Virus record (IMG/VR): IMGVR_UViG_3300035661_000001
Location: 186,001 to 250,000 of that record
Direction: 5' to 3' (one strand)
DNA: 64,000 nt
The translations under genes were made by a program, and so were the position numbers. The notes under the pieces are model-generated. The model was not told the DNA's origin. It ran no database searches and was given only the letters and a program-made list of their open reading frames with translations. Below, piece after piece: positions 18,473 through 57,427 of this stretch (the first letter of the stretch is position 1; every line of letters begins with the position of its first letter).

Positions 18473-19252
18473 ATGTCATATTCTAAACTCAGCGATAGAA
18501 TCGGAAGTTACTCTACTTCAACCGATTATAAAATATTAAATAGATTACCACTCATTATTACAGTTAATGGCAGGGGGTTCTCTAAATCTACATCTTTATT
18601 AGACAAACCTTTTTGTTCTAAATTTTCAGAATGCATGACATCGACTATGTTAAAAATGTGCTCTGAGATAGAAGGTACTTTATTTTCTTATTCATTTAAT
18701 GATGAAATTGTTATTGTTGCTCGTAATGATCAGCATCAAGATACAGCGGCTTGGTATGATAATAAATTACAAAAGATTTGTTCGGTCAGCGCAAGCATAG
18801 CTACTGAAAATTTTAATCGTATGGGTTCAGAATTGAATTTGTTAGGACATGGTATATTTTACTCTCATATATTTCCAGTGCCAACTTTAGCTGAAGCTAT
18901 AAATACATTAGTATTTAAACAACAACAAAATTTCTATTTATCAATTCAATCAGCCTGTCTTTACGAATTGTTAAAACATTACAATAAAAATACTATTAAA
19001 GAAATGTTAAATGATCTTAGTGTTGATGAAAAAATAGATTTATTACGACAGGAGTGTGATGTTAATTTCAATGACTATCCCATCGCTTTCCGACGTGGGG
19101 TAGCTACATACAAAGTACCTAAAGTCGTAAATGATGTTATGAAGAATAAATGGATTATAAATAGTGATCTTCCAATTTTCACTAAAGATCAATCATTTCT
19201 TGGAAACATTTTTAGAAACGGCGCGGATATTTTTAGAACCGATAGTTTTTAA
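18473..19252 (+). CDS. tRNA-His guanylyltransferase-like (Thg1/TLP) protein
   Basis: ITVNGRGFSK, FNDEI, WYDNKLQKICSVSAS, FRRG; first catalytic Asp appears as Asn. Confidence 0.8.
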   Translation: MSYSKLSDRIGSYSTSTDYKILNRLPLIITVNGRGFSKSTSLLDKPFCSKFSECMTSTMLKMCSEIEGTLFSYSFNDEIVIVARNDQHQDTAAWYDNKLQKICSVSASIATENFNRMGSELNLLGHGIFYSHIFPVPTLAEAINTLVFKQQQNFYLSIQSACLYELLKHYNKNTIKEMLNDLSVDEKIDLLRQECDVNFNDYPIAFRRGVATYKVPKVVNDVMKNKWIINSDLPIFTKDQSFLGNIFRNGADIFRTDSF

Positions 19253-19254
19253 TC

Positions 19255-19410
19255 ATGAAAAATGTTATCTGCCAATCTTCAAAGAAAAAAAGATATTCAA
19301 CGGAAAAAGAAGCTCACAAGATTATTTTACTACTGGGAATAAATATGCATATTTATCAATGTGAAGATTGTAATGGATACCATCTTACAAAAATAAAAAA
19401 TAAATTTTGA
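19255..19410 (+). CDS. Small Cys/His zinc-binding phage protein (51 aa, not in ORF track)
   Basis: MKNVIC...KKRYSTEKEA...YQCEDCNGYHLT. Confidence 0.65.
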   Translation: MKNVICQSSKKKRYSTEKEAHKIILLLGINMHIYQCEDCNGYHLTKIKNKF

Positions 19411-19454
19411 CCCATCCACTAGGCATACTGTGATATAGTGGATGTGCGAGATAC

Positions 19455-19528
19455 GCTAGTTTAGTATAATGGTATTATTCCTGTTTTGTACTCAGGTGAC
19501 AAGAGTTCGATTCTCTTAACTAGCTCCA
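19455..19528 (+). tRNA. tRNA-Thr(UGU)
   Basis: GCTAGTT/AACTAGC acceptor stem, anticodon loop TT-TGT-AC, T arm AAGAG-TTCGATT-CTCTT, encoded CCA. Confidence 0.85.
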
Positions 19529-19629
19529 AAATATTCTTTCAGTACATATAAGTACTTGTAGCGGAACCTAAGAATATTTTATGCTGCTTTAAGGGGACTG
19601 ATATGATTCAGTCCCAAATTTATTATAAT

Positions 19630-19983
19630 GGGCTTGAAATAGATTCGACTCTGTATGATACGTTAGTGTGCAAGTGCCAAATGATTATCACTGGCTTAAA
19701 AATATAGTCAACGTATAGCTGCAAACGACAATGCAACTGCTCCTTACGCTCTAGCAGCTTGAGGATGTTCTTTAGATAAGGTATCTTTAGTAATCAAAAG
19801 AGCATTAACCCACCAAAGATAGCACCACATTGCTCAACGGATAATGGTTGCGAAATAAACAGAGATAGCTTATTGGGCGAATCCAATAAAATGTCGTTAA
19901 CTACATTAAAATTAACTAAACTTGTAAACGAATAGTAACCTTGATTATGGAACACCCCGGGGCGGTACCGGGCAGGTCCACAA
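19630..19983 (+). ncRNA. ssrA: tmRNA, one-piece; tag (A)ANDNATAPYALAA* at 19721-19762
   Basis: 5' GGGCTTG..GATTCGAC pairs with 3' CAGGTCC; T arm CCCGG-GGCGGTA-CCGGG; resume codon GCA; tag ends ALAA; full CCA not encoded. Confidence 0.92.
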
Positions 19984-19985
19984 AT

Positions 19986-20023
19986 AAAAAATCCCCGATG
20001 AAATTCGTCGGGGATTTTTTTTT
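19986..20023. terminator. Bidirectional intrinsic terminator between tmRNA and lysin
   Basis: A6-TCCCCGATGA-AAT-TCGTCGGGGA-T9. Confidence 0.9.
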
Positions 20024-20035
20024 ATATATTGTGTA

Positions 20036-20764
20036 TTATTTTTTACCAAACAACCCGGCAAAAAATTGAATAACGCTTGCCCAGGGAGATAGCGCTACAG
20101 GCATAACAACCACTGTAGAAGGCGGCTGGCTCGCTGCTGACGGGGCTTCCACAATAGGTACAACGACAGGTTCCTCAACAGGCGTGGACGCCTCTACCGG
20201 CTCAGTAGTTGTCAAGCCTATGACAATCTTTTCAAAAGAATCATCTTTCATAAACTTATTGAAATATATTCCTACAGCTTTAGCATAATCAGCTTCAGGT
20301 GCAGTATAATATCCAGCCAATTTCAATAAATGCGCGAAGCCCGTTGGACTCCCATCTTCAACAGCTTGCCAAGCCTTCTTGTATCTTTTGTTTTTTAAAA
20401 AGTCTACTTGAAAAGCAAATCCATCAGCGAGTGTAGGAAATGATCTAAACCAAGTAGCTTGATGTGGTGGTTGAAAAATTACTTTTTTTCCTCCAAGGAT
20501 TTCCCAAACATTATTTAACATCATGTATTGAACACCTTCATCAGCAGTCGTATCTTTGCTAGGAATATATTTAACATTTCCAATGTTATTATTCCACATA
20601 GATCCTGTGGAACCAGTTTCAATAGCTGTTTGAGCATAAAGAACAGCAATGGATGCTTTTTGAGGGAACACCCCAAATTGTTTTTTCCAGCCTTCCACAA
20701 AACCTTTGATTAAATCATAATTGCTATAAGTTGTTCTTACTGTTGGTACTAATTGAGCCGACAT
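20036..20764 (-). CDS. Putative peptidoglycan hydrolase (GH73/FlgJ-like glucosaminidase), candidate endolysin
   Basis: AQTAIETG, NNIGNVK, FRSFPT, AGYYTA; GGAGG SD; Pro/Val/Glu linker and amphipathic C-terminus. Confidence 0.65.
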   Translation of the reverse strand: MSAQLVPTVRTTYSNYDLIKGFVEGWKKQFGVFPQKASIAVLYAQTAIETGSTGSMWNNNIGNVKYIPSKDTTADEGVQYMMLNNVWEILGGKKVIFQPPHQATWFRSFPTLADGFAFQVDFLKNKRYKKAWQAVEDGSPTGFAHLLKLAGYYTAPEADYAKAVGIYFNKFMKDDSFEKIVIGLTTTEPVEASTPVEEPVVVPIVEAPSAASQPPSTVVVMPVALSPWASVIQFFAGLFGKK

Positions 20765-20831
20765 AATTGCCTCCTGAGCCTATGCATTTAAAATGATAAG
20801 GTTATATATAATTGTTCATAAAGGAGATAAT

Positions 20832-21170
20832 ATGACGTAGGTTAAATCTGGTGATAAATTGTATGTTGTAACTCGTAATGATTTAAATCATGGGCAACAA
20901 GCTTCACAAATATGTCACGCTATGAGACAGTTCATTTCAGAAAATTCTGAAGTTGAGAATAACTGGTTTTGTAATTCTAATTATATTTGTTTATTATCTG
21001 TGCCTTCGGAAGAAGAATTAAAAACTTTAATATTCAAAGCTATTAACAAAAATATAAAATATTCATTATTTAAAGAACCTGATTTAAATGATTCTATCAC
21101 TGCCGTTTGTTTTGAACCCAGTAAAATAACTAAAAGACTATTGTCAAAATTACAATTAGCATTTCAGTAA
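20832..21170 (+). CDS. PTH2-family peptidyl-tRNA hydrolase-like protein with an in-frame TAG at codon 3
   Basis: AAGGAG SD, then ATG ACG TAG GTT AAA TCT GGT GAT AAA TTG in frame with YVVTRNDL..GQQASQICHA...FKEPDL...TA. Confidence 0.75.
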
Positions 21171-21195
21171 TATACTAATACATCTGTATGTTATT

Positions 21196-21924
21196 ATGCC
21201 TTATAAAAGAACTTATACAATTGATCAATTTTACCAAGCAATAAAAGAATCTTTTTTCATGACTGATGCTTTAAGAAAACTAGAGTTAACCGGTGGAAGT
21301 GCACAATCATTCAAACGATTGTTAAATGAATTAAACCCAGATACTTCTCACTGGATTAACCCTCATACGTTAAAAATAAATAATTTAAAAAACATAAAAG
21401 AAATTCCTCTAGAAGATATTTTAGTAAAAGACAGTTCATATGTTTATTCTTCTTTAAAAGAAAAATTAATAAAAAACAAATTGCTTGAATATAAATGCAA
21501 TATTTGTTCTATAAAATCATGGAATAATAAAAATATAGTTTTACAGCTTGATCACATAAACGGTATTCATAATGATAATAGGATAGAAAACCTTAGATTA
21601 TTGTGTCCAAATTGCCATTCACAAACAGATAGTTTTTGTGGTAAATTAAAAAAAGAAAATTTGCCCAAATGTAAATATTGTGTAAATTCTGTTAGAGATA
21701 AACGTGCAAAAACTTGTCAAGCATGTTATTTATCTGGTGATTTTACAAAAATCAGTTGGCCATCAGATAATGAATTAAATGAATTAATATTAAATAATAA
21801 AATTAAAGATGTTGCAAAAATGTTAAATGTTAATGAATCTTCATTAAGATGGCGCCTGAAAAAGAGAAATATAATGATAAGCAAAACGAAAGAAATGATT
21901 AAATCATTTTTGTCCATGTTCTGA
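21196..21924 (+). CDS. HNH endonuclease
   Basis: CNIC, LQLDHINGIHNDNRIENLRLLCPNCHSQT; C-terminal helix-turn-helix. Confidence 0.9.
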   Translation: MPYKRTYTIDQFYQAIKESFFMTDALRKLELTGGSAQSFKRLLNELNPDTSHWINPHTLKINNLKNIKEIPLEDILVKDSSYVYSSLKEKLIKNKLLEYKCNICSIKSWNNKNIVLQLDHINGIHNDNRIENLRLLCPNCHSQTDSFCGKLKKENLPKCKYCVNSVRDKRAKTCQACYLSGDFTKISWPSDNELNELILNNKIKDVAKMLNVNESSLRWRLKKRNIMISKTKEMIKSFLSMF

Positions 21925-22332: not shown

Positions 22333-22361
22333 AAAATTAGTATTGGGGCTGAGTAAATAGT

Positions 22362-22580: not shown

Positions 22581-22586
22581 TGTTTA

Positions 22587-22781: not shown

Positions 22782-22850
22782 TGCTTGCGAAAATTCCTTT
22801 TTGGGTTGGTCAAATTGTCGGTAAAATCATAAAATGATATATGATATCTT

Positions 22851-23021
22851 ATGACAAGAGCAGAAATTCAAAACAAAATTAGAGTTATTAGAGATGAATT
22901 GGAAAATCGCCATAAATATGGCACGGTTAAAATAGCCGATTCAAAAGGTACCCCGATACCTGCAGAAAAATTACAAGCAGAGCTTTATTCACTTATTTAT
23001 AAAATGAGTAGGTATGAGTAA
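22851..23021 (+). CDS. Small hypothetical protein (56 aa, not in ORF track)
   Basis: MTRAEIQNKIRVIRDELENRH...KMSRYE; fills the gap and overlaps the next start. Confidence 0.6.
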   Translation: MTRAEIQNKIRVIRDELENRHKYGTVKIADSKGTPIPAEKLQAELYSLIYKMSRYE

Positions 23022-23478
23022 ATTAATCTTATCTATAGAACTTGTACCAAAATCTAGTTGGCTTAATAATGTAAGAGCCATTGTATCTCAGCAACAATGG
23101 GACATCATTCGAAGTAGAGTTTATTCAAAATTTTATAATATGTGCGAAATATGTGGTGGTGTTGGTCCTAAACATCCCGTAGAATGCCATGAAGTTTGGT
23201 CATATGATGATGAAACTAATATTCAAAAATTAGAAAGTATGACAGCGTTATGCCCTAATTGTCATATGGTTAAACATATAGGATTAGCACAAATTAACGG
23301 TAATTATCAAAAGGCTTTAAGCCATTTTATGTCAATAAATGGCTTGGGTAAAGACAAAGCGGTTAAATTAATCAATGATTCTTTCGTTTTATGGCAGAAG
23401 AGATCTAAGAAAAAATGGACGATAGACGTATCTTCTCTAAAAGAATTTGGTATTGATATAGAAAGTTTTAAAAAATGA
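23014..23478 (+). CDS. HNH-like nuclease domain protein
   Basis: CEICG, ECHE.W.Y, LCPNCHMVKH. Confidence 0.75.
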   Translation: MSKLILSIELVPKSSWLNNVRAIVSQQQWDIIRSRVYSKFYNMCEICGGVGPKHPVECHEVWSYDDETNIQKLESMTALCPNCHMVKHIGLAQINGNYQKALSHFMSINGLGKDKAVKLINDSFVLWQKRSKKKWTIDVSSLKEFGIDIESFKK

Positions 23479-23900
23479 AATGTCCGACTTGCTTATCTAT
23501 TATGAAATGTATTTCTGCTATAAATCCTGTTCCAGGTCAACCTGGAAAAGATCGCATGGACCTACATTGTTATAACAGAGAGGATCCAAAATCACCTAAT
23601 ATGTGTAGAGCAAGAGCACATATGGGTGTAATAACGGAAGATCCTAAAGAATGGGTATGTCATGAATATAATCTTTCATTTAAACATAATGAAAATTTAT
23701 TTTATTTAATTGGTTATGATAAATTAGTGGATCCTTATTTTCAGAGAAGACCTGTCGAGGAAAGCTATACTATTTTATCTGATGTTTTTGGAAGAGAAAT
23801 GGTAAAAGTAAATTTTGTTCCAATTTCGACTGGTGATGATATGCATGAACGGGCATATGATTTGTTTCATAGCCTACCGGATCAGGCACCAATTTCCTAA
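23475..23900 (+). CDS. Hypothetical protein; last 10 codons derive from a tRNA remnant
   Basis: CPTC N-terminus; stop TAA lies in the anticodon loop of the tRNA-Arg relic. Confidence 0.6.
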   Translation: MKCPTCLSIMKCISAINPVPGQPGKDRMDLHCYNREDPKSPNMCRARAHMGVITEDPKEWVCHEYNLSFKHNENLFYLIGYDKLVDPYFQRRPVEESYTILSDVFGREMVKVNFVPISTGDDMHERAYDLFHSLPDQAPIS

Positions 23901-23935
23901 ATTGTTTTAAATAGGTTCGATTCCTATTAGGGATA
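23870..23935 (+). pseudogene. tRNA-Arg(CCU) remnant lacking the 5' acceptor strand
   Basis: D arm GCCT/AGGC, anticodon arm CAAT-TTCCTAA-ATTG, T arm ATAGG-TTCGATT-CCTAT, 3' strand TAGGGAT with no matching 5' strand. Confidence 0.75.
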
Positions 23936-23957: not shown

Positions 23958-24677
23958 ATGAAGACGGCTCTATGTTTATCAGGTCATATAAGAAGCTATA
24001 AATCAGCTTATAAAATAATGTTTGACAAGATTATTCAACCATTAAATTGCGATATTTTTATTCATACTTGGGACACAGAGGGATTCGATGTCGTTCGTGG
24101 AGATCAACATTTAATGGATACCAATGTTGACGAGAATGAATTAAAAGATTTTTATCAAGCAAAAGATGTTGCGGTAGAAAAGATGAAAATATTTGATACT
24201 GATAAATATCAAGGTCGATTAGGTCCCGGCACGAGAAATAAAAATACTGTTATTTCAATGTTTGATGGAATCAAACAATCAAATGATTTAAAATCTTCGT
24301 ATGAAATTTCGAATAACATAAAATATGACATAACTATTAGGGCTAGACCAGATTTATTAATTAATCATTTTGATTGTCAATTTTTAAATGATAATAAAAA
24401 TGGAATTTACTTTCCAAAAGCTGGTAACTATCATGGATTAAATGATCAGTTCGCTTTCGGTAAATCAGAGTATATTGATTTTTATTCTGATTTTTATTCA
24501 AATTTAGATCATTTTTTTAATTTAGGATGTCCTTGGCATCCTGAGTCAATTGTAAAATTTGGAATGGTCCAAAATAAAATACCTATTTTAAGAAGCAATA
24601 TAAAATATGGTATTTTAAGAGCAAATGGCGATATATTTTATAATGCTCAAGAGAGACGTTTTGGCGATGAATTTTGA
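23958..24677 (+). CDS. Putative glycosyltransferase-like protein
   Basis: ALCLSGHIRS, DIFIHTW, YDITIRARPD, NDQFAFG, HPE. Confidence 0.6.
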   Translation: MKTALCLSGHIRSYKSAYKIMFDKIIQPLNCDIFIHTWDTEGFDVVRGDQHLMDTNVDENELKDFYQAKDVAVEKMKIFDTDKYQGRLGPGTRNKNTVISMFDGIKQSNDLKSSYEISNNIKYDITIRARPDLLINHFDCQFLNDNKNGIYFPKAGNYHGLNDQFAFGKSEYIDFYSDFYSNLDHFFNLGCPWHPESIVKFGMVQNKIPILRSNIKYGILRANGDIFYNAQERRFGDEF

Positions 24678-25848
24678 TAAATCAGTAGACTTAACTATCA
24701 TTAGCAACATACTAATGGCTGATGGTATTGGCAGACAAGGATTAGGATTAATCGAAGCTGTAAATGATAAATTATCATTGAATGTTTTACAGTTACCTCC
24801 TAAATCTTATAAAGACATTTCGCCGGAAGTATTGAAAGTTCTTATAAAACCTTTCAATAATTTTGGCAAAATTGCTTTTTGGACTTCGATTCTAGGAACA
24901 AATGCTGCTTCAATAAAACAGCACTCAGCAATTACATCTCCATTAAAAATTGCATACTCTATGTTTGAATCAGATGCAATACCAAAAATATGGGTAGATA
25001 CATTAAATTCAATTTATGACATGGTCATTGTGCCTGATAATTACTTGGTATCAATTTATGTTAATTCTGGAGTAAAAATACCAATTTTTGTCATACCTCT
25101 AGGTATTTATGTACAAGACTTATTAAATTTACCTTTTAAATCTGCCGCAGGAAATCCATTTACATTTGGTATGTCCGCTGGATTTTGGAAACGTAAAAAT
25201 CATATTAAATTATTAGAGGCATTTTCAAAAAGATTTGGAAATGATGAAAAATTCAAATTAAAATTACATGGCAGATTTGGTCCTTTTAAATCAGAAGTAG
25301 AAAAAGCAGTAAAAGAATTAGGGTTAAAAAATGTAGAATTATTCTCTACTCCTTTTTCTGTAAAAGATTACAATCAATTTATGAATGAAATTGATTGTTA
25401 CGTTTTCCCTTCCATGGGTGAAGGGTTCTCTGTAACTCCTAGAGAGTCTTTAGCTTTAGGTAAACCTTGTATAGTAACAAATAACACGGCGCATAAAACT
25501 ATTTGTGATAGTGGATATGTTGTTCCTTTACTTGCAAATAAAAAAATACCAGCGGTATATGAAGTATTTGGAAACCAAATTATTGGTAATTTTTATGACT
25601 GCGACGTAAATGATTTATCAAAATCAATGATGAATGTTTATGATAATTTTGATGAATTTTCAAAAAAAGCCCAACTCGGAAGAGAATGGGTTAAACAATA
25701 TTTATGGTCTGAGTTAGCACCGACATATTTGAATATTTTCAAACCAAAATTAATTGAATTAAAAAAATCAAATGTAGTTAATAAGAATGGATTTCAAACT
25801 AACAACGAGAATCTCTTTCGTAAAATGCAGGAGTTATTAAATGATTAA
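24667..25848 (+). CDS. Glycosyltransferase family 4 (GT-B)
   Basis: YSMFES, RKNH, FPSMGEGFS..PRE (EX7E). Confidence 0.85.
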   Translation: MNFDKSVDLTIISNILMADGIGRQGLGLIEAVNDKLSLNVLQLPPKSYKDISPEVLKVLIKPFNNFGKIAFWTSILGTNAASIKQHSAITSPLKIAYSMFESDAIPKIWVDTLNSIYDMVIVPDNYLVSIYVNSGVKIPIFVIPLGIYVQDLLNLPFKSAAGNPFTFGMSAGFWKRKNHIKLLEAFSKRFGNDEKFKLKLHGRFGPFKSEVEKAVKELGLKNVELFSTPFSVKDYNQFMNEIDCYVFPSMGEGFSVTPRESLALGKPCIVTNNTAHKTICDSGYVVPLLANKKIPAVYEVFGNQIIGNFYDCDVNDLSKSMMNVYDNFDEFSKKAQLGREWVKQYLWSELAPTYLNIFKPKLIELKKSNVVNKNGFQTNNENLFRKMQELLND

Positions 25849-26626
25849 TAACAATATAGTTACCTGGTCAGTTATAAATGATGAAATATCATTTATTGAT
25901 GATTTAATTAAATTTCATTTAACTTGGGTTGATGCTATGTATTTTTTGGATACAGGCAGCCAAGATGGCACATTAGAAATATTGAAAAAGTATAGTGCCC
26001 AAGACTCTAGAATTATCGTTGAAGAATATACTACGAAGTATGTCTCTCAGTACGAGGTCGGCTGGTTCGATATGCAGGATCCTTTCCCTGAAATTACAGT
26101 AAGGAATTTTGCGATTAATCGTACGGAGAGCTTGTTGAAACCCAATTGGATGATTCAATTAGATGGTGATGAAGTTTACACATCTAACGTTAAAAACATA
26201 CTAATGGATAATGAAAAATATTCATGTATAGGGCATAGCACTATAGACCCTATAGTAAGTTTAGATAAATTGCCCAAAGAACGAAGAGGCAATTATATTT
26301 TACATGACCCTCATGTAAGAATTTGGAAAGCTAATCAAAATTTTCATTATATAGAAAATCCAGCATTTCCTGGACATCACTATCATTGTATTCCAACTTG
26401 GGATGGTAGAAAAGCTCATTTGTTTCATCATCCAAAAACATTGTTTGTAAATGAAATTTTCGATTTCCATTTACATTGGATGTATGGAAAAAAAATAGAA
26501 TCATTTTTTAATAAAATCAATATTTTTGATAAAAAAATTATGATTCAAGATCAAGAATTAAATGAATATAGTAATATGTTGCCCGACATTTTTTGGGAAA
26601 ACCGTAAAAAATGGTTAGAGGATTGA
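25841..26626 (+). CDS. Glycosyltransferase family 2-like (GT-A)
   Basis: DTGSQDGT, RN.A, LDGDE. Confidence 0.75.
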   Translation: MINNNIVTWSVINDEISFIDDLIKFHLTWVDAMYFLDTGSQDGTLEILKKYSAQDSRIIVEEYTTKYVSQYEVGWFDMQDPFPEITVRNFAINRTESLLKPNWMIQLDGDEVYTSNVKNILMDNEKYSCIGHSTIDPIVSLDKLPKERRGNYILHDPHVRIWKANQNFHYIENPAFPGHHYHCIPTWDGRKAHLFHHPKTLFVNEIFDFHLHWMYGKKIESFFNKINIFDKKIMIQDQELNEYSNMLPDIFWENRKKWLED

Positions 26627-30775: not shown

Positions 30776-31136
30776 AGTTTTTATTTGTGTAGGTTTAGTT
30801 GATAGTAAAATTGTTGCAGATGCCATATTAATTTCATCGGCGGATGAGGCTAAAGAACAATTTGCAAGAAAATATGGTAACATTCCTAATAAAATTTTGG
30901 GACCATATTTGAATCCTAAAAAGATAGAGCATGAAAAAGTTTTGAGATTTATATCCCATAAATCTCAAAAAGCAATTTATAATGATTGGTTAGTAAATGC
31001 GTTTTTGTTGCATGATCCGGAAGATCATGCATATTTGATTTTTGTTAAAAAGACTGATGATGTTTCCGCCATACCGCCAAAAGGCACTATAATTGTTCCC
31101 ATTCAAGATTTGAGGTTTATTGAAAATGAAAAATGA
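30756..31136 (+). CDS. Hypothetical protein
   Basis: ORF track; ATG 30756 preferred. Confidence 0.55.
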   Translation: MRVKKPKVFICVGLVDSKIVADAILISSADEAKEQFARKYGNIPNKILGPYLNPKKIEHEKVLRFISHKSQKAIYNDWLVNAFLLHDPEDHAYLIFVKKTDDVSAIPPKGTIIVPIQDLRFIENEK

Positions 31137-31476
31137 GCTGCTTGCCCAAATAAAAGAAAAACTGCTTACGATGAAATCAGAGCTTTTAATAAAAGCAAAT
31201 AAATTACCAGATATAGACACTGACGGAGACGAAACCGACGAGGTGCAAGGTAATTTATTAATAGAAATTGCCAATCAATTAAGCTCTCGCGATATATCGA
31301 AAATATCATTAGTTAACAATGCTTTACGTAAAATAGAAGATTCATCTTATGGTTTATGTGAAGATTGTGAAGAAGAGATTCTAGAAAAAAGATTATTAGC
31401 AAATCCGTGTTTTAAGACTTGCGTTCTATGTGCCGAAGCTAGAGAAGCTGAAGAAAAACAAAGAAAGAGGTTCTGA
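31120..31476 (+). CDS. dksA: DksA/TraR C4 zinc-finger protein
   Basis: Coiled-coil tip DETDEV; YGLCEDC..I...RL.A.P...CVLC. Confidence 0.88.
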   Translation: MKMKNELLAQIKEKLLTMKSELLIKANKLPDIDTDGDETDEVQGNLLIEIANQLSSRDISKISLVNNALRKIEDSSYGLCEDCEEEILEKRLLANPCFKTCVLCAEAREAEEKQRKRF

Positions 31477-31478
31477 TT

Positions 31479-32063
31479 TTGAATACAATTGTAACAGAGA
31501 CAACCGATCATGGAGAGTTTCCAGTAGATATCTACCAAAAATTATCAAATGATAGAATTCTATTCATCTGTGATGTTATTGATGATAAATTAGCTACTGA
31601 TATCGTGGCTACCTTATTACTTAAAGATTCTGAAAATCCTGAAGAAAAAATTACTTTATTTATAAATTCAGAAGGTGGAGACATTCGTAATGTCTTAATG
31701 ATTTATGACATGATGTGTTTGGTACAAGCACCAATTGAAACAGTATGTATTGGATCTGCTATGGATGAAGCTGCAATTATTCTAGCTGCCGGCACACCTG
31801 GTATGAGATTTGCTACTAAAAATTCAGTAATATCAATTAATCAATTAACCCATGATTGGGTAAATGTTTCAGACTTAACGGATGCTAAAAAAGTTCTGGA
31901 TCAATTCTTAAGTGATAATAAGAAAATGATGGAGATTTTGGCAAAATCTTGTAGTAAAACATATAAACAGGTAATAGAAGATTTTAATCGTAGAGTTTTC
32001 ATGAATTGTAATCAAGCTGTTAAATATGGCTTAATTGATAAGGCGGTATCGGTTAAAAAATGA
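31479..32063 (+). CDS. ClpP-family protein, catalytically inactive (ClpR-like)
   Basis: ClpP fold motifs (LSNDRILF, INSEGG); catalytic Ser position reads GSAMDEA and His position reads ISINQL. Confidence 0.85.
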   Translation: MNTIVTETTDHGEFPVDIYQKLSNDRILFICDVIDDKLATDIVATLLLKDSENPEEKITLFINSEGGDIRNVLMIYDMMCLVQAPIETVCIGSAMDEAAIILAAGTPGMRFATKNSVISINQLTHDWVNVSDLTDAKKVLDQFLSDNKKMMEILAKSCSKTYKQVIEDFNRRVFMNCNQAVKYGLIDKAVSVKK

Positions 32064-32653
32064 ATCATCTAATAGGAAAACTTCATCAGCATGACACGCC
32101 ACAATCTAGTATGTTTCCGGGATATATGGAAACTTATATTAGGTTATCAAAAAATAGAATAATTTTTCTAAACGAAAATATAACTAAACAGTCAGCATCT
32201 GAATTGTCAGCTTTATTATTGTATTACGATAATTTATCTCAAGAAGATATCTCTATTTATTTACACTGTGACGGCGGAGATGCTGACGGATTAGCTAATA
32301 TTTATGATATAATGCAAATGGTAAGATCTCCAATAAAAACTATTTGTATTGGTAAATGTTACTCTGCCGCAGCAGTCATATTGGCAGCAGGAACTCCAGG
32401 AGAAAGATACGCATTTAAGCATTCAAAAGTTATGATACATGGTATTCAGGCTGGATTCCCCATCCCCGGACATGATATGACGAATAGCAAAAGTTATTAT
32501 GAGTTTCTCAAAGAGAACAATGATAGTGTTATGAGAATATTAGCACATCATACGGGTCATCCTTTAGATGAAATAAAACAAGCGTGTACCCGTGATGTTT
32601 GGTTGTCAGCACAGGAAGCAAAAAATTACAATATTGTAGACCACGTTTTATGA
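32060..32653 (+). CDS. clpP: ATP-dependent Clp protease proteolytic subunit (triad intact)
   Basis: GKCYSAA (Ser), VMIHG (His), TRDVWLSAQEA (Asp). Confidence 0.9.
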   Translation: MNHLIGKLHQHDTPQSSMFPGYMETYIRLSKNRIIFLNENITKQSASELSALLLYYDNLSQEDISIYLHCDGGDADGLANIYDIMQMVRSPIKTICIGKCYSAAAVILAAGTPGERYAFKHSKVMIHGIQAGFPIPGHDMTNSKSYYEFLKENNDSVMRILAHHTGHPLDEIKQACTRDVWLSAQEAKNYNIVDHVL

Positions 32654-40051: not shown

Positions 40052-41368
40052 ATGAAAATTAAAGAATATAAAGAATTTTTAACGCCAACGTTATTAGAAG
40101 CGCAAGAAACCCTTTCAAAAGAAATTTTGGATTCGTTAACAGAAATATCTGTTCAAGCATTAGGTATTGAGGACCCTAGACCAACTGCCAATTTTATTGA
40201 TTTAATGAAATGGACCGAAGCAAATTTCAAAAAATTCTTAAAAGATCAAGATCATATAAATAGATATGTTCACAATAGAATTATTATTGATGGACAGTTT
40301 TTGAAATTTTGTAATGAAAATTCTGTTACTGTAAAATGTTTGTATAAAGATTCTATTATCTCTTGGAAAACAGACCATGATTTTGAGAAATTTTTTGTAC
40401 AAGGAGTATTTCTTGTCAAAACTAAAAACGTAGAATTTCTTCAGGCAGCCCTTTTTCATAAGGGAAATCAAAATGAAGATGAAGTTAGTTTTTTTACAGT
40501 TGTATCTAATAGTAATTATGAAGAATATCTTAAATTAAGAAATTCATTTGATGAATGGATACAAAAAAGAGATAGAAGTAATTTACATATTAGAGTTGTA
40601 GACGGAGAAGATATTCCGTATACTAAAGATCATACATGGGGCGATCTGTTTTTACCTACAGAAATTAAAACGGAATTACAGGCACTAGTTGAGAATTTCT
40701 TAGCTTCAAAAGAATTCTATAATTCTAATAGAATACCTTGGAAAAGAGGAGTATTATTATACGGTCATCCTGGTAACGGCAAGACATCTATTATTAAAAC
40801 TGTTATGTCGATGTATAATTTTAAACCAGTGACTGTCGTACCCGGAGCACCGGATGAAGCCATTAGAGAAGCTTTTACATACGCTGAAGAACAAAGTCCT
40901 TCCTTACTGTATTTTGAAGATTTAGATTCCATTCTAGAAAAGAATGATGCTTCTTCATTCTTGAATTTAATGGACGGCATTTCTGCGAAGAATGGACTGT
41001 TAGTCATTGCTACGGCTAATGATGTGCGCAAACTAAAATCTAACATTACAGACAGACCATCAAGATTTGATAGAAAATTTGAAATTCCCCAACCAAATCC
41101 AGATATGGCTCATATATACATTAAGAGGTGGTTTGGAAACATGATTACCGCGAGAAAATGTAGAGAGCTTGCAAAAATATCCGTTAAGTCGGGATTTTCG
41201 TATGTTCATTTGAAGGACTTATATATTTCTGCAATGTTTGCTGCTTTATCACAAAACCGTAAAGTTCCAACAGAGAGAGATATAGATAGTGCATTGAATC
41301 GTTTAATCAAGGAAAAAACCCCGTTAACTGGTTCGAAGATTGTAGACACTGACAGATATTTCAAGTAA
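40052..41368 (+). CDS. Classic-clade AAA ATPase
   Basis: RGVLLYGHPGNGKT, FEDLD, second region of homology RPSRFDR. Confidence 0.88.
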   Translation: MKIKEYKEFLTPTLLEAQETLSKEILDSLTEISVQALGIEDPRPTANFIDLMKWTEANFKKFLKDQDHINRYVHNRIIIDGQFLKFCNENSVTVKCLYKDSIISWKTDHDFEKFFVQGVFLVKTKNVEFLQAALFHKGNQNEDEVSFFTVVSNSNYEEYLKLRNSFDEWIQKRDRSNLHIRVVDGEDIPYTKDHTWGDLFLPTEIKTELQALVENFLASKEFYNSNRIPWKRGVLLYGHPGNGKTSIIKTVMSMYNFKPVTVVPGAPDEAIREAFTYAEEQSPSLLYFEDLDSILEKNDASSFLNLMDGISAKNGLLVIATANDVRKLKSNITDRPSRFDRKFEIPQPNPDMAHIYIKRWFGNMITARKCRELAKISVKSGFSYVHLKDLYISAMFAALSQNRKVPTERDIDSALNRLIKEKTPLTGSKIVDTDRYFK

Positions 41369-41387: not shown

Positions 41388-41729
41388 TTGATAGTTATGT
41401 CGAAAGATATTTCAAAGAAATTCAAGAAAAATTCATTTAAAAAGGCGTCGAAAGGGGGTGAATCCGTAAGCCAGGACTCTCATTCCAATGAAGCTGTATT
41501 AGCACAACCATTGGAGGTCAAAGTCTATAACAATAACTTTGATAAAGCTCTTAGAGCTTTTAGAGCTTTAGTACAAAAAGAAAGAATCTTATCTGTATAT
41601 AAAGAAAAACAGGCATACGAAAAACCTTCACAAAGAAGACGTCGTAAGAAGAATGAAGCGAAACGAAAAATTTTAGAACTACAGTCCGATAGGTCTAAAG
41701 TTAAGAGGTCAGAATCCTCTGAAAAATAA
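41388..41729 (+). CDS. rpsU: Ribosomal protein bS21 with N-terminal extension
   Basis: EVKVYNNNFDKALRAF...YEKPSQRRRRK. Confidence 0.88.
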   Translation: MIVMSKDISKKFKKNSFKKASKGGESVSQDSHSNEAVLAQPLEVKVYNNNFDKALRAFRALVQKERILSVYKEKQAYEKPSQRRRRKKNEAKRKILELQSDRSKVKRSESSEK

Positions 41730-44031: not shown

Positions 44032-44550
44032 ATGTCAAAGAAAACATTATTATTGAGTGCCAGATATGAAGTAATTTCATTTATTCCAGAAAGAAAAGTT
44101 TACAAATTACTTTTTAGTCCAAAAGACAAAGTAGAGGTAATTTCTTCCTGGGATGATGATATCATTTGGACAAATGGCATGATAAAGCATCCCTCTATTT
44201 TAAGATTAAAGAATCATGTTAAGAGAAATTTTTTCAATTCTAATTTTAGTAGAAAAGCTTTAGTTAAAAGAGATAAAAGTACTTGTCAATATTGTAGTAG
44301 AAAATTGTCCGCATCTCAAATTACTATTGATCATGTTGTTCCAAAAGCACAAAGAGGTGGAACTACTTTTACAAATTGTGTAATTTCATGTCAAATTTGT
44401 AACGGAAAAAAAGCGGATAGGACTCCTGATCAGGCGGGAATGATTTTGTTGAAAAAACCAACACATCCATCTTTTGCGGCACAACATTACTTAGCAGACC
44501 CTCAAGAATACTGGCATAATGATTGGGACGATTATCTAAGAAATTATTGA
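44032..44550 (+). CDS. HNH endonuclease (McrA-like)
   Basis: RDKSTCQYC, TIDHVVPK..GG.T..TNCV.SC..CN..K. Confidence 0.9.
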   Translation: MSKKTLLLSARYEVISFIPERKVYKLLFSPKDKVEVISSWDDDIIWTNGMIKHPSILRLKNHVKRNFFNSNFSRKALVKRDKSTCQYCSRKLSASQITIDHVVPKAQRGGTTFTNCVISCQICNGKKADRTPDQAGMILLKKPTHPSFAAQHYLADPQEYWHNDWDDYLRNY

Positions 44551-45285: not shown

Positions 45286-45807
45286 ATGATCATAAAAAAT
45301 AATGAAGAGCTTTTAAGGGTCAAATGTGAAGACGTTCTTCCCGAAGAAGTTGGAGAATTAGTATTGGTTTTAGAAAAAGAACTAGAACAATCTGGAAAAT
45401 TAGGCGTCCCTGGAATAGGTCTGGCAGCACCACAAATAGGAATAGCTAAAAATATTGCCATAGTGAGATTAGGTAATATTAATTTTGATTTAGTAAATGC
45501 GAAGATATATAAAGGATATGACCAAACAATTTTTAGACAAGAAGGCTGTTTATCATTTCCCGGAAGAATTGAAGATACATTAAGATATCAAGAAGTACAT
45601 ATAACTAATAATTTAGTTTATCCTCACAGTATGATTGCAGCTGGATTAGTAGCTGTATGTTGCCAACATGAAATTGATCATTTGAATAGTTCATTATTTA
45701 TGGATCATGCTGTACCCAAACCTCCAATCAAGAAAAACAAAATTGGACCGAATGATCCATGTGTATGTGGATCAAATAAAAAATACAAAAAATGTTGCCA
45801 AAAATGA
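45286..45807 (+). CDS. def: Peptide deformylase with C-terminal SEC-C motif
   Basis: GIGLAAPQIG, EGCLS, HEIDH; GPNDPCVCGSNKKYKKCC. Confidence 0.93.
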   Translation: MIIKNNEELLRVKCEDVLPEEVGELVLVLEKELEQSGKLGVPGIGLAAPQIGIAKNIAIVRLGNINFDLVNAKIYKGYDQTIFRQEGCLSFPGRIEDTLRYQEVHITNNLVYPHSMIAAGLVAVCCQHEIDHLNSSLFMDHAVPKPPIKKNKIGPNDPCVCGSNKKYKKCCQK

Positions 45808-46224: not shown

Positions 46225-46545
46225 ATGATTTTTTTGAGTCGAGAAAACGAATTAATTTTATCAGGATCCCAGTCTTTATATTTTTATGCTTCTTGGATGC
46301 CTTATCATAAGAGAATGATCTCTATGATAGGTAAAATGGAGCAAAAATATAAAGATCTGGGATTTTTTGCTATTGATACTGATTATTTTAAGACTTTTTG
46401 TAAAAGATTCGATATTACTTCTATCCCAACAATTATAATTTTTAAGGATGGAAAAGAATTAAAAAGAATTGAAGGGTTGATTTTAACCAGTGCCCTGAAG
46501 GTCGCATTTGCTGATATATGTGATTCTATAGGAGAACCCAAATGA
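46225..46545 (+). CDS. Thioredoxin-fold protein lacking CxxC
   Basis: FYASWMPYH replaces F.A.WCGPC; FDITSIPT...FKDGKE. Confidence 0.75.
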   Translation: MIFLSRENELILSGSQSLYFYASWMPYHKRMISMIGKMEQKYKDLGFFAIDTDYFKTFCKRFDITSIPTIIIFKDGKELKRIEGLILTSALKVAFADICDSIGEPK

Positions 46546-54082: not shown

Positions 54083-54244
54083 TTGGTCATATAAACTTAT
54101 CAAAAAATATAAGAGATATTATTGAAAATAGCTATAATAATGGTTTTTATCCTCCACTAAATAATTTTATTATTACATAATTTTGGTATTTTGCGAATGA
54201 GTTATATTCATTCATACACAATATCACTAAAAGATCGAATTAAA

Positions 54245-55030: not shown

Positions 55031-55033
55031 CAT

Positions 55034-55732
55034 ATGTTAGAATTTAAAATTTGTAATAAGTGTGGTGATGAGAAATCATTAAATGAATTTGTAGCAAAAA
55101 GAAATAATTGTAAATTATGCAGAAATAAGTCTCTCAAAGCTAAAAAAAGTTTGAAACCTAAGAAAGAAAAAGTCACCAAAGAGCATAAATTACAAAAAAT
55201 CAAGGAGTGGCAAAAGAATAATCCTGACAAAAGAGCATCATCTGTAAAAAAATATAATTATAATCATAAATCTGAGGCAAGAAATTATTATTATGATAAT
55301 AGAGAAACGATAATATATCGTGTAAAACAATATAAAATATATAATCGTGAAAAAGTCAATCAAGCATTAAGAAATAAAAGAAAAAATATTACAATTAAAT
55401 TAAGGCATTATACTTCTGTTTTAATTAGAAGAAGTTTACGTGGAGAAAAATATTCTATTATGAAATTTTTACCATATTCAATTGAAGAATTAAAACAAAA
55501 TATAGAATTATTATTTGAGCCATGGATGAATTGGCAAAATTGGGGCATGTATAATCCTAATGTTTGGAATGATAATGATCAATCCACCTGGACATGGAAT
55601 ATTGATCATATCATACCGCAAAGCAAATTGCCATATGCTTCTATGGAAGATGATAATTTTAAGAAGTGTTGGTCTTTAAATAATTTAAGACCTTTAAGTT
55701 CAAAAGAAAATATATTAAAAGGTAATAAATGA
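55034..55732 (+). CDS. HNH-type homing endonuclease
   Basis: CNKC, CKLC; W.IDHIIPQS...CWSLNNLRPL...N..K. Confidence 0.75.
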   Translation: MLEFKICNKCGDEKSLNEFVAKRNNCKLCRNKSLKAKKSLKPKKEKVTKEHKLQKIKEWQKNNPDKRASSVKKYNYNHKSEARNYYYDNRETIIYRVKQYKIYNREKVNQALRNKRKNITIKLRHYTSVLIRRSLRGEKYSIMKFLPYSIEELKQNIELLFEPWMNWQNWGMYNPNVWNDNDQSTWTWNIDHIIPQSKLPYASMEDDNFKKCWSLNNLRPLSSKENILKGNK

Positions 55733-55750
55733 AAGTTACAATAAAAAAAA

Positions 55751-56167
55751 TTGAATGTTGATGCAGATATCGATCCTCTTGACAATATGATTACTACAGA
55801 TTTTTCCATAGTTTGGATCGCACCAAATCCAGGAGTGATTGAAAATCAAAAATTAGATGGAAGATTTATTGACAGCAATAAAATTACTTATGATTTTCAA
55901 TCATCTAAACAATGGCAAGATTCATTCGCAAAACATTTAACTATAAAATTAGATTTTTATAATGTTGTGCTTGGAGCAAATGCCAATAAATTGTACAACG
56001 ATCTTGATTTTCAAATGTCAAAAAATTTAAATGAAGCGTTCCCAATGAATCAACAAAATGCTGATAGATTTTCAATTTCATTGATTGAATTGTGGCAAGC
56101 GTTTCAAGAATTAAAAGCAGACGGTAAAGCTGATATAAATACCAATTATACTGTAAAATGTTTATAA
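55751..56167 (+). CDS. Hypothetical protein
   Basis: ORF track (TTG start; an upstream ATG near 55729 is possible). Confidence 0.5.
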   Translation: MNVDADIDPLDNMITTDFSIVWIAPNPGVIENQKLDGRFIDSNKITYDFQSSKQWQDSFAKHLTIKLDFYNVVLGANANKLYNDLDFQMSKNLNEAFPMNQQNADRFSISLIELWQAFQELKADGKADINTNYTVKCL

Positions 56168-56176
56168 AGAGGAAAA

Positions 56177-57427
56177 ATGGAAATAGAGATTAAAGAATTA
56201 GAGTCCTGTAAACTTAACATTGTTTATGTAGCTGATGCGGGTGAGATTTTAGAAAAGCGTGGCGTTGTTATTCAAGCTTTTAAGAAAGCTCCAGTTCCAG
56301 GTTTCAGACCAGGAAAAGGATCAATTGATGCTATTAAATTTCATTATAAAAATCAAATTGAAGAGTCATTAAAACGTGGTTTGGCAGAAGACGCTTATCA
56401 TAACACTCTTTTTGAAAAGAAATTAAAGCCACACGGAGCACCGACTTTCAAAAGCCTTCTTATGGGAGATGGTAAATTCACTTGTGAATTTGATTTATTC
56501 GTAAAACCAGATTTTGAACTAGCTGATTTTAAGAGTTTAAATATCCCAAAACCACATGAAGATATAAGTATCTTAGAATTTTCAGAAAAGCTTTTACAAG
56601 ATTTAAGACACAAATTCGGAGAGACTGCTCCTTATACGGAAAATGATTTTGTACAACAGGGAGATAATGTAATTATAGATTATGTTGGAACTGTTGATGG
56701 AACAAGAGTTGATTCTTTGTGTACCGAAGGTGAAATGTTAACTGTTGGTCAAAGTCAACTGCCTAATTTTGATTCAAGCTTATTGGGCATGACGTTGTCA
56801 GAAACTAGAGAATTCGATTTAGTTGTTCCTGAAAATGGAATGCCATCTTTAGCTGGTAAAACAGTTCATTTTAATGTGACATTGAATATGGGTTCAAAAA
56901 CTGAATTATGTCCATTAGATGATTCATTAGCTGAAAAAATGGGAAAGAAAACTATTCTAGAATTAAGAGAATTAGTTAATGCTGCGGCAAGCGGTAGAGT
57001 GTCTAATATGCTTAAATTGAAAATAAATGAATCAGTTGCTGCTCATTTAGTTAACGATAATTCTTTCGAAGTTCCTAATTGGTTAAGTTTATCAGAAGCT
57101 CAATATTTAGCACACAGTGCTAAATTAGATTGGGTAACTATGAGTGAGTCGGATAAAGAAAAATATCTAGAAATGGCAATTAGAAATGTTAAATTGTCAT
57201 TGGTATTAGATAAAATTAGAGAAACAGAACCAGAAGCCCAATTATCAGATCAAGAAGTATTCAACATAATTAAAGGTAATTTAGTTAAAACACAAAATAG
57301 TAAAGAATCAGTAGATGATATTATTAAAGAGATGAATAGGACCGGCTATTTACAAATAATGTTTTCTAGAATCAAAGACGAATATACGCTAGATTTTGTA
57401 TCGAAAAAAATCAATATCATTGAGTAA
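56177..57427 (+). CDS. tig: Trigger factor
   Basis: Ribosome-binding PGFRPGK, FKBP domain (GD.VIIDYVG...G), C-terminal domain; GAGG SD. Confidence 0.92.
   Translation: MEIEIKELESCKLNIVYVADAGEILEKRGVVIQAFKKAPVPGFRPGKGSIDAIKFHYKNQIEESLKRGLAEDAYHNTLFEKKLKPHGAPTFKSLLMGDGKFTCEFDLFVKPDFELADFKSLNIPKPHEDISILEFSEKLLQDLRHKFGETAPYTENDFVQQGDNVIIDYVGTVDGTRVDSLCTEGEMLTVGQSQLPNFDSSLLGMTLSETREFDLVVPENGMPSLAGKTVHFNVTLNMGSKTELCPLDDSLAEKMGKKTILELRELVNAAASGRVSNMLKLKINESVAAHLVNDNSFEVPNWLSLSEAQYLAHSAKLDWVTMSESDKEKYLEMAIRNVKLSLVLDKIRETEPEAQLSDQEVFNIIKGNLVKTQNSKESVDDIIKEMNRTGYLQIMFSRIKDEYTLDFVSKKINIIE

Follow-up and report, generated by a model that had tools for sequence, protein, structure and literature searches.

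The question raised by a 64-kb stretch of viral DNA (the window, bases 186,001–250,000 of a 451,956-bp IMG/VR phage record; coordinates below are window-based unless marked as genome coordinates) is whether its many genes for translation and protein quality control, among them a transfer-messenger RNA (tmRNA), a ClpP protease pair, a peptide deformylase (PDF) and a trigger factor, act as one system or as several. The initial annotation had read them as a coherent takeover of translation quality control, possibly as a counter to the toxins or abortive-infection systems with which a host cleaves mRNA or tRNA. All the elements it named were found in the window, and most of them lie inside the span 18473–57427 to which it had assigned them, but the tRNA-repair genes Pnkp (2343–3287) and Rnl1 (6428–7642) are located upstream of it. 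Most of this ~450-kb phage's protein genes for translation and proteostasis fall within the window, and they belong to the conserved core of a large environmental clade. The conserved, host-dependent repertoire is real, and nothing here shows a single pipeline or an anti-toxin role. It probably consists of at least four separate modules, which would add to the host machinery over a long infection while relying on it: (a) the T4-type pair of Pnkp and Rnl1 for tRNA healing and sealing; (b) an island of a Thg1-like gene, tRNA-Thr, tmRNA and a PTH2-like gene, joined in relatives by amber-suppressor tRNAs and tRNA-Arg(CCU); (c) a dksA-like/clpR/clpP operon whose products would form a core mixing active with inactive ClpP subunits; and (d) the ribosomal protein bS21, expected to act at initiation, together with a PDF fused to a SEC-C motif and the trigger factor, expected to act in exit-tunnel processing and folding.

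The record was rated complete by CheckV and has terminal repeats. The window has a GC content of 28–33% throughout, matching the 75–410 kb body of the genome, and nearly all of its open reading frames (ORFs) are carried on the plus strand. The TerL gene, confirmed by phrog_675 (E 3e-60), is located ~23 kb downstream of the window; its relatives, with 63–82% identity on contigs of up to 481 kb, define a clade of huge phages. Conservation was counted over 14 related records, six of which are at least 97% complete and are called near-complete below (single genomes carry G numbers, G000 being the genome under study); synteny was counted over seven fetched relative regions, and residues were checked in eight clade sequences (G000 and seven relatives). 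The DNA sequencing runs holding the locus came from microbial mat, sediment, rock and freshwater metagenomes. The clade is abundant, with the trigger-factor ortholog present on 40 IMG/VR contigs and the PDF ortholog, including its SEC-C fusion, in more than 100 metagenomic protein clusters. A near-identical cultured phage was not found in the INPHARED/GenBank phage collection, where the trigger factor matched mostly short sequences of faecal origin that are entered as "Bacteriophage sp." and carry no annotation.

Absence of co-conservation had been named by the initial annotation as the result that would speak against a joint role, and such absence was not observed: the trigger factor, the adjacent ClpR/ClpP pair, PDF and bS21 were each present in 14/14 clade records and the tmRNA in 11/14, including 6/6 near-complete genomes, with the short PTH2-like gene following in 10/14. 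Gene order and spacing were conserved across the clade records as well, and 33 of the 61 window ORFs, including seven of the eight translation genes, recurred in all seven syntenic regions. This conservation is nevertheless unspecific. The block from 26.6 to 57.4 kb is collinear as a whole, and 26 of its 42 unrelated ORFs were also found in 7/7 relatives; because these are equally universal, the shared conservation characterizes the core block as such and cannot serve as specific evidence that the genes are functionally coupled.

The distribution of the parts among individual genomes pointed the same way. G011 (97% complete, 361 kb) kept the tmRNA, ClpR/ClpP, bS21, PDF and trigger factor without the PTH2-like gene, Pnkp, Rnl1 and release factor 2 (RF2). 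The lineage of G008 and G009 (TerL 63% identical) kept the Thg1-like and PTH2-like genes, ClpR/ClpP, bS21, PDF and trigger factor without Pnkp and Rnl1, and neither a tmRNA nor a tRNA was found at the syntenic site, which is occupied by small ORFs, or elsewhere in 239 kb. The tmRNA and the PTH2-like gene, therefore, each occur without the other. In the distant G014 (trigger factor 36% identical), ClpR/ClpP, bS21 and trigger factor keep their order, and no PDF gene intervenes. Tight units are limited to dksA-like/clpR/clpP and to an AAA+ ATPase gene with bS21. Analysis of k-mer enrichment in 276 upstream regions revealed no promoter motif common to the translation genes; the sole enriched k-mer, TGATATAT, is extended −10-like, with a near match upstream of tRNA-Thr, and a sigma-70 scan did not rise above shuffled sequences. 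The functional assignments made in the initial annotation were largely right, but a single pipeline was left unsupported, given the separate phyletic patterns, the lack of a shared promoter motif and the atypical enzymes described below.

The trigger factor (56177–57427, plus strand) is full-length, with the Pfam domains Trigger_N, FKBP_C and Trigger_C, and passes the NCBIfam tig equivalog (TIGR00115) with 187.6 bits against a cut-off of 180.2. Its ribosome-docking motif GFRPGKG is found at residue 42, and G(F/Y)R(P/K)GK was kept in 8/8 sequences, the final proline of GFRxGxxP not being conserved. The PDF (45286–45807, plus strand; Pfam Pep_deformylase E 5e-27) has intact GIGLAAPQ, EGCLS and HEIDH motifs, kept in 8/8 sequences, and reaches 90.7 bits on the NCBIfam equivalog, below the cut-off of 103.95. 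It is fused to a C-terminal SEC-C zinc motif (CxC...CC; Pfam E 3e-7), and this fusion is conserved across the whole clade; the motif may take the place of the C-terminal helix with which bacterial PDF binds the ribosome. The bS21 protein (41388–41729, plus strand; TIGR00030 59.4 bits versus 28.95, Pfam E 2e-15) carries a basic N-terminal extension of ~40 amino acids that is conserved in the clade. Its gene is always directly preceded by that of an AAA+ ATPase of the classical clade (YjoB/Cdc48/PAN-like; 40052–41368, plus strand; Pfam AAA E 2e-18; E 1e-31 against Bacillus subtilis YjoB 7w42), present in 7/7 relatives with 53–75% identity; a role of this ATPase as a proteostasis partner is possible but unproven.

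The protease genes form the second half of a trio. The first gene (31120–31476, plus strand; present in 7/7 relatives) encodes a putative DksA/TraR-family zinc-finger protein (Pfam zf-dskA_traR E 2e-7, 31.2 bits versus 24.9), which matched NCBIfam DksA_like with E 4.5e-13 and stayed well below the cut-offs of the DksA models; it has four cysteines and, across the clade, a tip motif DETDEV (DxxDxV) in place of the DxxDxA expected of the acidic coiled-coil tip. The clpR gene starts 3 nt after it and overlaps clpP by 4 nt. The ClpR-like protein (31479–32063, plus strand; Pfam CLP_protease E 7e-46) is a catalytically dead ClpP paralog: in an alignment to Thermus thermophilus ClpP 6hwm, its residues at the triad Ser, His and Asp are Asp, Asn and Arg, respectively, and the triad was absent from 8/8 orthologs. 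The neighbouring ClpP (32060–32653, plus strand; Pfam E 4e-45, PDB ClpPs E 3e-35), with which it is 31% identical, has an intact Ser-His-Asp triad; the Ser and His were kept in 8/8 sequences, and the third residue was Asp in six and Glu in two. The ClpR-like call of the initial annotation was correct in that the first copy lacks all three catalytic residues and the second keeps the triad. The name is used in a functional sense only and does not imply descent from cyanobacterial or plastid ClpR, the best PDB matches of the protein being ordinary bacterial ClpPs. A role of the pair as a prohead protease was rejected on gene context and on NCBIfam scores: ClpP reached 122–151 bits on the ClpP models, all below the equivalog cut-offs, and 54 bits on the head-maturation model. 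Together with the pairs and tags of the tmRNA, the PDF motifs and the GFRPGK motif of the trigger factor, the retention of the triad in ClpP against its loss in ClpR suggests, from comparison of the clade sequences, that the function-defining features are under purifying selection.

The partners with which these proteins would have to work were mostly missing. The absence of smpB, clpX/A and a release factor from the window, stated in the initial annotation, was confirmed; over the whole genome smpB and clpX were likewise not found, while RF2 was found outside the window. SmpB was detected neither genome-wide in G000 nor in the 14 clade records (0/14), and genome-wide searches of G000 yielded no ClpX zinc finger, no ClpX/ClpA-type AAA_2 unfoldase, no EF-Tu-family GTPase, no S1 and no IF3. 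The need for host partners, as had been anticipated, was thus borne out for SmpB, ClpX/ClpA and EF-Tu. Three candidates were considered and rejected. The AAA_2-like protein at 224–1330 has a weak ClpB/ClpA-D2 likeness (E 8.5e-8) and corresponds to the generic phage ATPase phrog_1297; the AAA+ ATPase upstream of bS21 is YjoB/Cdc48-like, and no link to ClpP could be made for either of the two; and the ORF at 23014–23478, tried as a cryptic SmpB, has a CxxC...H...CxxCH motif that is not SmpB-like. The latter ORF encodes 154 amino acids, looks HNH/His-Me-like by eye without a Pfam hit, and follows the phyletic pattern of the tmRNA in the seven fetched relatives (present in six, absent from G009).

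The tmRNA gene (ssrA; 19630–19983, plus strand) was recognized by Rfam RF00023 over the full length of the model (positions 1–374) with 51.6 bits, the gathering score being 47 and the scores of the relatives 51–142 bits; it was not called by ARAGORN. The tag frame read off the sequence (19721–19762) consists of a GCA resume codon followed by ANDNATAPYALAA and a TGA stop. All 11 clade tags are open, start with ANDN and end with MAA, LAA, QAA or QVA, so that the last two residues are always small (AA in 10/11, VA in 1/11). The acceptor stem, GGGCUUG/CAGGUCC, contains the G3:U70 pair. In a full-length alignment of the 11 clade tmRNAs 70 pairs were predicted, 43 of them with compensatory changes; all seven acceptor pairs are intact in 11/11 sequences, four with compensatory changes, and G3:U70 was kept in 11/11. 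The open tags and the covariation argue for a translated tag and a functional tmRNA. The gene is immediately followed by an intrinsic terminator (19986–20020, plus strand) with a 16-bp stem and a T-run. It is preceded by a tRNA-Thr(UGU) with encoded CCA (19455–19528, plus strand; found by ARAGORN, Rfam tRNA 60.4 bits), a single gene in G000 versus 2–4 in the relatives, and a decayed ortholog of tRNA-Arg(CCU) lies downstream (23864–23935, plus strand; Rfam tRNA 29.8 bits, at the cut-off). This remnant aligns to the tRNA-Arg(CCU) of the relatives, but has a mutated 5′ acceptor strand and no CCA, and ARAGORN was silent on it.

In the proposed mechanism, the tmRNA 3′ end would first be repaired by a CCA-adding enzyme, after which host alanyl-tRNA synthetase would charge the molecule via G3:U70, and host SmpB and EF-Tu would deliver it to stalled ribosomes. 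The stalled chains would be tagged with ANDNATAPYALAA, and a host unfoldase of the ClpX/ClpA type would feed them either to host ClpP or to the phage ClpP/ClpR core. A gene of the CCA-adding nucleotidyltransferase type is indeed encoded at ~268.4 kb of the genome, and the 3′ end of the tmRNA may therefore be restorable.

The PTH2-like gene (20832–21170 with its in-frame leader, plus strand; code-11 ORF from TTG 20859) matched Pfam PF01981 with 38.9 bits (cut-off 23), and the NCBIfam Pth2 equivalogs gave 25 bits against cut-offs of 82 and 126; a word-index homolog search with the protein returned the query alone. Its AlphaFold2 model (predicted local distance difference score, pLDDT, 88.7; predicted template-modelling score, pTM, 0.84) was compared with the PDB by Foldseek, and the top 14 matches were all archaeal Pth2 or human Bit1 (E down to 1e-7; template-modelling scores 0.59–0.80, at least 0.72 for 13 of the 14). 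On the basis of this model, the predicted protein has the PTH2 alpha/beta fold.

The start of this gene is peculiar. A leader AAGGAG-N6-ATG-ACG-TAG, with its ATG-ACG-TAG at 20832–20840, is in frame with the PTH2-like ORF, and the same arrangement of a Shine–Dalgarno sequence, ATG, one or two variable sense codons and TAG was found in eight genomes (G000, G001, G002, G003, G004, G006, G007 and G010), the leader stop always being TAG. In the basal lineage G008/G009, the gene starts directly with ATG-ATT-AAA, and both the leader TAG and an adjacent suppressor are absent. The first canonical start after the leader TAG is at codon 7 in G000–G002, codon 10 in G010 and codon 15 in G006/G007; the first beta-strand of the model is made up of the invariant residues D5, K6, L7, Y8, R12 and D14. 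An upstream gene read in another frame extends with its 3′ end into the leader in four relatives; no such gene is present in G000 and G002, which nevertheless keep the leader. Amber-suppressor tRNA(CUA) genes follow the PTH2-like gene at a distance of 30–900 bp in five relatives, and at this locus neither G009 nor G011 was found to have one. G000 lacks the adjacent suppressor tRNA and has a tRNA(CUA) at genome 80119–80195. G007 additionally carries a tRNA(UUA), and in G000 an HNH gene (21196–21924) stands between the PTH2-like gene and the tRNA-Arg remnant, where the relatives hold suppressor tRNAs. Production of the PTH2-like protein by amber read-through is the most economical reading, a TTG start, translational coupling and frameshifting being possible too, and the combination of the leader with adjacent suppressor tRNAs suggests, from the gene arrangement, suppressor-gated translation of the PTH2-like gene.

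A release factor was found outside the window. RF2 is encoded at genome 407194–408282 by a full-length gene with no need for a frameshift site; the protein has the SPF and GGQ motifs and scored 402 bits on TIGR00020, above the cut-off. It is present in 5/14 clade records and in 5/6 near-complete ones, G011 being the exception. A host call from RF2 (best matches Polyangiaceae, 48%, and Leptonema, 41%) was dropped, since the search had been seeded by a pattern and does not identify nearest neighbours. Only 36 of the 427 long ORFs of the genome, and 5 of the 205 between 100 and 350 kb, end with TAG. Genome-wide TAG recoding was rejected, because coding coverage under code 11 is already 82–99%, and a 35:1 clustering of TAG-joined frames at the contig ends was discarded as confounded by a segment of 43–62% GC, in which long spurious frames become more frequent.

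The tRNA-repair module is represented by two T4-type enzymes. The tRNA-healing kinase-phosphatase Pnkp (2343–3287, plus strand; Pfam HAD_PNKP E 4e-40, AAA_33 E 4e-17) has a Walker A motif GCPASGKST and the phosphatase motif DLDGT, and the tRNA-sealing ligase Rnl1 (6428–7642, plus strand; phmmer E 2e-12 against T4 RNA ligase 1, 2c5u/5tt6) has a putative motif I, KYDG, at residue 120. The two were always found together, in the same 10/14 clade records. They are separated by ~3 kb, and a LAGLIDADG endonuclease gene (3318–4241) lies between them. The Thg1-like protein of the tmRNA island (18473–19252, plus strand; Pfam Thg1 E 8e-17, 61.8 bits versus 29.2) belongs to the Thg1-like protein (TLP) family with the 3′–5′ polymerase fold and matched Bacillus thuringiensis TLP 4kgk over 240 residues with E 7e-24; its Asp-Glu pair (NDEI) is retained in 8/8 sequences.

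One alternative to separate modules is the integrated quality-control pipeline, running from initiation to tRNA repair and selected to neutralize mRNA- or tRNA-cutting toxins or abortive infection. Its parts do occur within one 55-kb stretch, all on the plus strand, they are co-conserved in the near-complete genomes, and the genome encodes 41 tRNA genes. The T4 enzymes Pnkp and Rnl1 are known to counter the PrrC anticodon nuclease. A role of tRNA repair, Thg1 and PTH2 against tRNA-cleaving immunity has also been proposed (Iyer et al., 2021; PMC7824862). However, the equally universal unrelated ORFs of the core block (26/42), the independent loss of parts in G011, G008/G009 and G014, the lack of a shared promoter motif upstream of these genes, the DNA-metabolism and glycosylation genes interspersed with them and the altered active sites of the PTH2-like and Thg1-like proteins all speak against such a pipeline, which we regard as unlikely. 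The tmRNA island might instead be chiefly a module for stop-codon suppression and its collateral damage, in which tRNA(CUA) would read the leader TAG, so that the PTH2-like protein would be produced only under active suppression, RF2 would keep termination at UAA and UGA, and the tmRNA and ClpP would clear the ribosomes and proteins that result when UAG is read through into 3′ ends. This is compatible with separate modules and is favored by the leader in eight genomes, always with TAG despite the rarity of that stop (36/427 long ORFs), by the next canonical start falling inside or after the invariant first beta-strand in G006/G007 and G010, and by G000 and G002 keeping the leader without an overlapping upstream gene. 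The distribution of suppressors agrees with it: tRNA(CUA) follows within 30–900 bp in five relatives and is encoded at genome 80119 in G000, G009 has a plain ATG and no local tRNA(CUA), and G011 lacks there both the PTH2-like gene and tRNA(CUA); G011 is also the only near-complete genome without RF2. Modules of suppressor tRNA and release factor have, moreover, been published (Borges et al., 10.1101/2021.08.26.457843). On the other side, the genome-wide recoding signal is absent (code 11 coverage 82–99%), the clustering of TAG-joined frames is confounded by the GC-rich segment, the TTG at codon 7 could start translation in G000, G001 and G002, the overlap with the upstream gene in four relatives adds constraint and makes coupling or frameshifting possible there, and the adjacent suppressor tRNA is absent from G000. 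As the chief role of the island, suppression with clearance of its damage is a plausible account which falls short of probable. A narrower proposal is put forward only tentatively, being rather unlikely: in this standard-code clade, suppression and rescue would be joined in the tmRNA island as one self-regulating unit, in which tRNA(CUA) would gate the non-canonical PTH2-fold protein via the leader, and RF2, the SmpB-less tmRNA with its remodelled elbow and ClpP/ClpR would handle UAG read-through.

The reading as several active, host-supported modules is itself weakened by a number of features. The tmRNA of G000 barely exceeds the gathering score with its 51.6 bits, ends with ACAA (G000 only; ACCA in the ten relatives) and has a non-canonical T-loop, GGCGGUA instead of UUCGAnU. 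The catalytic residues of PTH2, which we take from the Sulfolobus solfataricus Pth2 literature to be the Lys of G-K and the Asp/Thr of D-A-G..T, are not matched in the PTH2-like protein: the GK of AF2095 aligns to GQ, the clade having G-[Q/Y/S]-Q with the Lys absent from 7/7 sequences, and in place of the DAG..T segment there is EPD(x)(N/D), whose invariant Asp is of ambiguous equivalence. Because the catalytic Lys is missing, the hydrolase activity is uncertain. In the Thg1-like protein IDG has become VNG, so that the first Asp, presumably metal-binding like the following Asp-Glu pair in Thg1 and TLP enzymes, is Asn in 8/8 sequences; by their residues, both proteins may have altered or lost their rescue and repair activities. 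The locus was found in no RNA run on record. Two small public runs, whose RNA type was guessed, contain contigs 95–97% identical to the tmRNA (19624–19963), but nothing from the flanking 5.5 kb, and they were picked using the tmRNA itself; the contigs are compatible with an abundant stable tmRNA of a close relative in runs chosen by this gene. The predicted ClpP–ClpR complex scored 0.26 (mark 0.34), which counts neither for nor against co-assembly. Part of these features would also be expected if the island were decaying in G000, with the tmRNA, and perhaps the PTH2-like and Thg1-like proteins, as relics or as decoys titrating host SmpB: the ACAA end is unique to G000, whose Rfam score is the lowest bar one, the T-loop is non-canonical throughout the subclade with a change from GG to AG in the D-loop analogue, the neighbouring tRNA-Arg(CCU) has decayed, the adjacent suppressor is missing with an HNH gene (21196–21924) in the interval, and a single tRNA-Thr is left against 2–4 in the relatives. 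Against decay, the tag frame, resume codon, stop and G3:U70 of G000 and all helices are intact, the latter covarying across the clade, and a terminator follows the gene. Hosts adding CCA post-transcriptionally tolerate an ACAA-type tmRNA end, and a CCA-adding-type enzyme is encoded by the phage as well. The T-loop change (GGCGGUA, GGCAGUA or UGCAAUG) is shared by 7/11 clade tmRNAs, G000 included, and is correlated in these seven genomes with the GG-to-AG change, suggesting co-adaptation. Decay is thus distinctly unlikely. An origin of the bacterial-looking genes from host DNA, mis-assembled or flanking a provirus, is scarcely credible: several relatives are labelled "provirus" by IMG/VR, the contig ends are GC-rich (43–62%) and the "terminal repeat" is a tandem tRNA-Arg unit, but the window has the 28–33% GC of the 75–410 kb genome body, its genes alternate with phage genes and homing endonucleases and stand ~23 kb upstream of TerL, their order is repeated on 40 viral contigs obtained independently from different samples, and the proteins score far below bacterial equivalogs (ClpP 122 versus 309 bits, for example). 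Separate modules relying on host partners accordingly remain the probable explanation, with their interactions, timing and benefit against host toxins to be understood as inferred.

The genes between the modules have diverse predicted functions. The translation genes are non-contiguous and interspersed with those for glycosyltransferases, a type IA topoisomerase, an FtsK-like ATPase, SbcCD, MT-A70, HNH endonucleases, an HU-like protein, a DnaG-type zinc finger, a deoxynucleoside monophosphate kinase and a PD-(D/E)XK nuclease, and with a lysozyme-like gene on the opposite strand. Two groups of sugar-modification genes (12695–17907 and 24625–26626) encode a methyltransferase, a PglD-like acetyltransferase, a DegT/EryC1 aminotransferase and glycosyltransferases of the GT4 and GT2 families, which may serve DNA or virion glycosylation. 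An HNH gene (44032–44550) is located upstream of PDF, and a thioredoxin (46225–46545, plus strand; Pfam Thioredoxin E 2e-12), present in 7/7 relatives, is encoded near it. A stand-alone protein of 221 amino acids encoded at 60035–60700 has an FtsH-like HEAGH zinc-protease motif and a weak match to Pfam Peptidase_M41 (E 7e-5, below the cut-off); it might conceivably act with the AAA+ ATPase encoded beside bS21 in the manner of a split FtsH. Outside the window, a ~117-kb segment across the contig ends (genome 1–75000 plus 410000–451956) has 42–62% GC, compared to 28–37% elsewhere, and the direct terminal repeat of G000 turned out to be a tandem unit of ~127 bp containing tRNA-Arg(UCU). In G010 the GC content rises slightly at the ends, and in G007 it is ~43% over the first 207 kb fetched.

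Several of these traits are oddities that can be tested: a virus-encoded trigger factor passing the threshold of the bacterial equivalog, a viral ClpP paired with a dead ClpP and provided with no unfoldase of its own, a deformylase in which a SEC-C zinc motif may stand in for the ribosome-binding tail, a tmRNA long retained without SmpB and with correlated changes in its elbow, and a PTH2-fold protein whose translation appears to depend on amber suppression. They bear on how viruses may re-tune the ribosome exit site, ribosome rescue and stop-codon reading with mostly host parts. If the amber gate holds, the PTH2-like gene would be a case of natural gene expression controlled by suppressor tRNA outside fully recoded phages, and the suppression-plus-rescue unit, if true, would be a new regulatory logic, in which a stop-codon-gated rescue factor links suppression to ribosome rescue.

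Among known systems, the huge phages of Al-Shayeb et al. (2020; PMC7162821) resemble the present phage in the size of the genome, the number of tRNA genes (41 here) and the types of genes. Their PDF, release factors, tmRNA, many tRNAs, tRNA-repair genes and bS21 proteins with a basic extension at the N-terminus were taken to mean that host translation is redirected. SmpB accompanies the tmRNA in some of those phages, in contrast to the present clade (0/14), and their tmRNAs were called by ARAGORN, which misses the one of G000. The main text of that paper contains no words starting with "Clp" or "chaperon", while the trigger factor and ClpP/ClpR are universal in the clade described here. The anti-toxin explanation of the initial annotation is essentially that of Iyer et al. 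(2021; PMC7824862) for jumbo phages, where tRNAs, Pnkp/ligase, a CCA-adding enzyme, Thg1 and PTH2 were set against tRNA-cleaving immunity, PTH2 was proposed "to rescue jammed ribosomes" and ClpP was noted as a host-directed peptidase. The PTH2-like protein of the present phage differs in lacking the catalytic Lys and in standing behind a TAG leader near amber-suppressor tRNAs, and the Thg1-like protein in its Asp-to-Asn replacement; neither tmRNA nor trigger factor is mentioned in the main text of that paper. A tmRNA together with ClpXP is carried by phage G (PMC12484599). With the T4 Pnkp/Rnl1 pathway, the repair pair has the Walker A, DxDxT and KxDG motifs in common, and the two genes are present or absent together in the clade, but here they are separated by a LAGLIDADG gene (~3 kb).

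The ClpP–ClpR cores of cyanobacteria and plastids (PMC7966870) likewise have a dead paralog beside an active ClpP, here kept under selection with 50–85% identity in the clade. In contrast to them, the present pair is phage-encoded, is preceded by a DksA-like gene and has no ClpX, ClpC or ClpA in the genome, its co-assembly being a prediction. In the bacterial tig-clpP-clpX neighbourhood (PMC7804408), trigger factor and Clp protease are encoded in one region, as they are here, and a functional link between trigger factor and ClpXP has been described in bacteria (PMC7804408). The phage arrangement differs in the distance of 24 kb between tig and clpRP, in the absence of clpX and in the many unrelated genes between. 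The code-change modules of Borges et al. (10.1101/2021.08.26.457843) combine a suppressor tRNA with a release factor; the present low-GC phage likewise has tRNA(CUA) and RF2, with TAG depleted as a stop, and in-frame stops were proposed in that paper as translational gates. As a difference, the present genome reads well in the standard code, and the one conserved in-frame TAG found is at codon 3–4 of the PTH2-like gene beside the tmRNA; tmRNA and peptidyl-tRNA hydrolase are not mentioned in the main text of that paper. No paper on a phage-encoded trigger factor or on a phage ClpP/ClpR pair was found in the literature searched. The general theme of huge or jumbo phages with translation genes is already published; distinctive for the phages described here are the trigger factor, the ClpP/ClpR pair without an unfoldase, the PDF–SEC-C fusion, the SmpB-less tmRNA with a remodelled elbow and the apparently amber-gated PTH2-fold protein.

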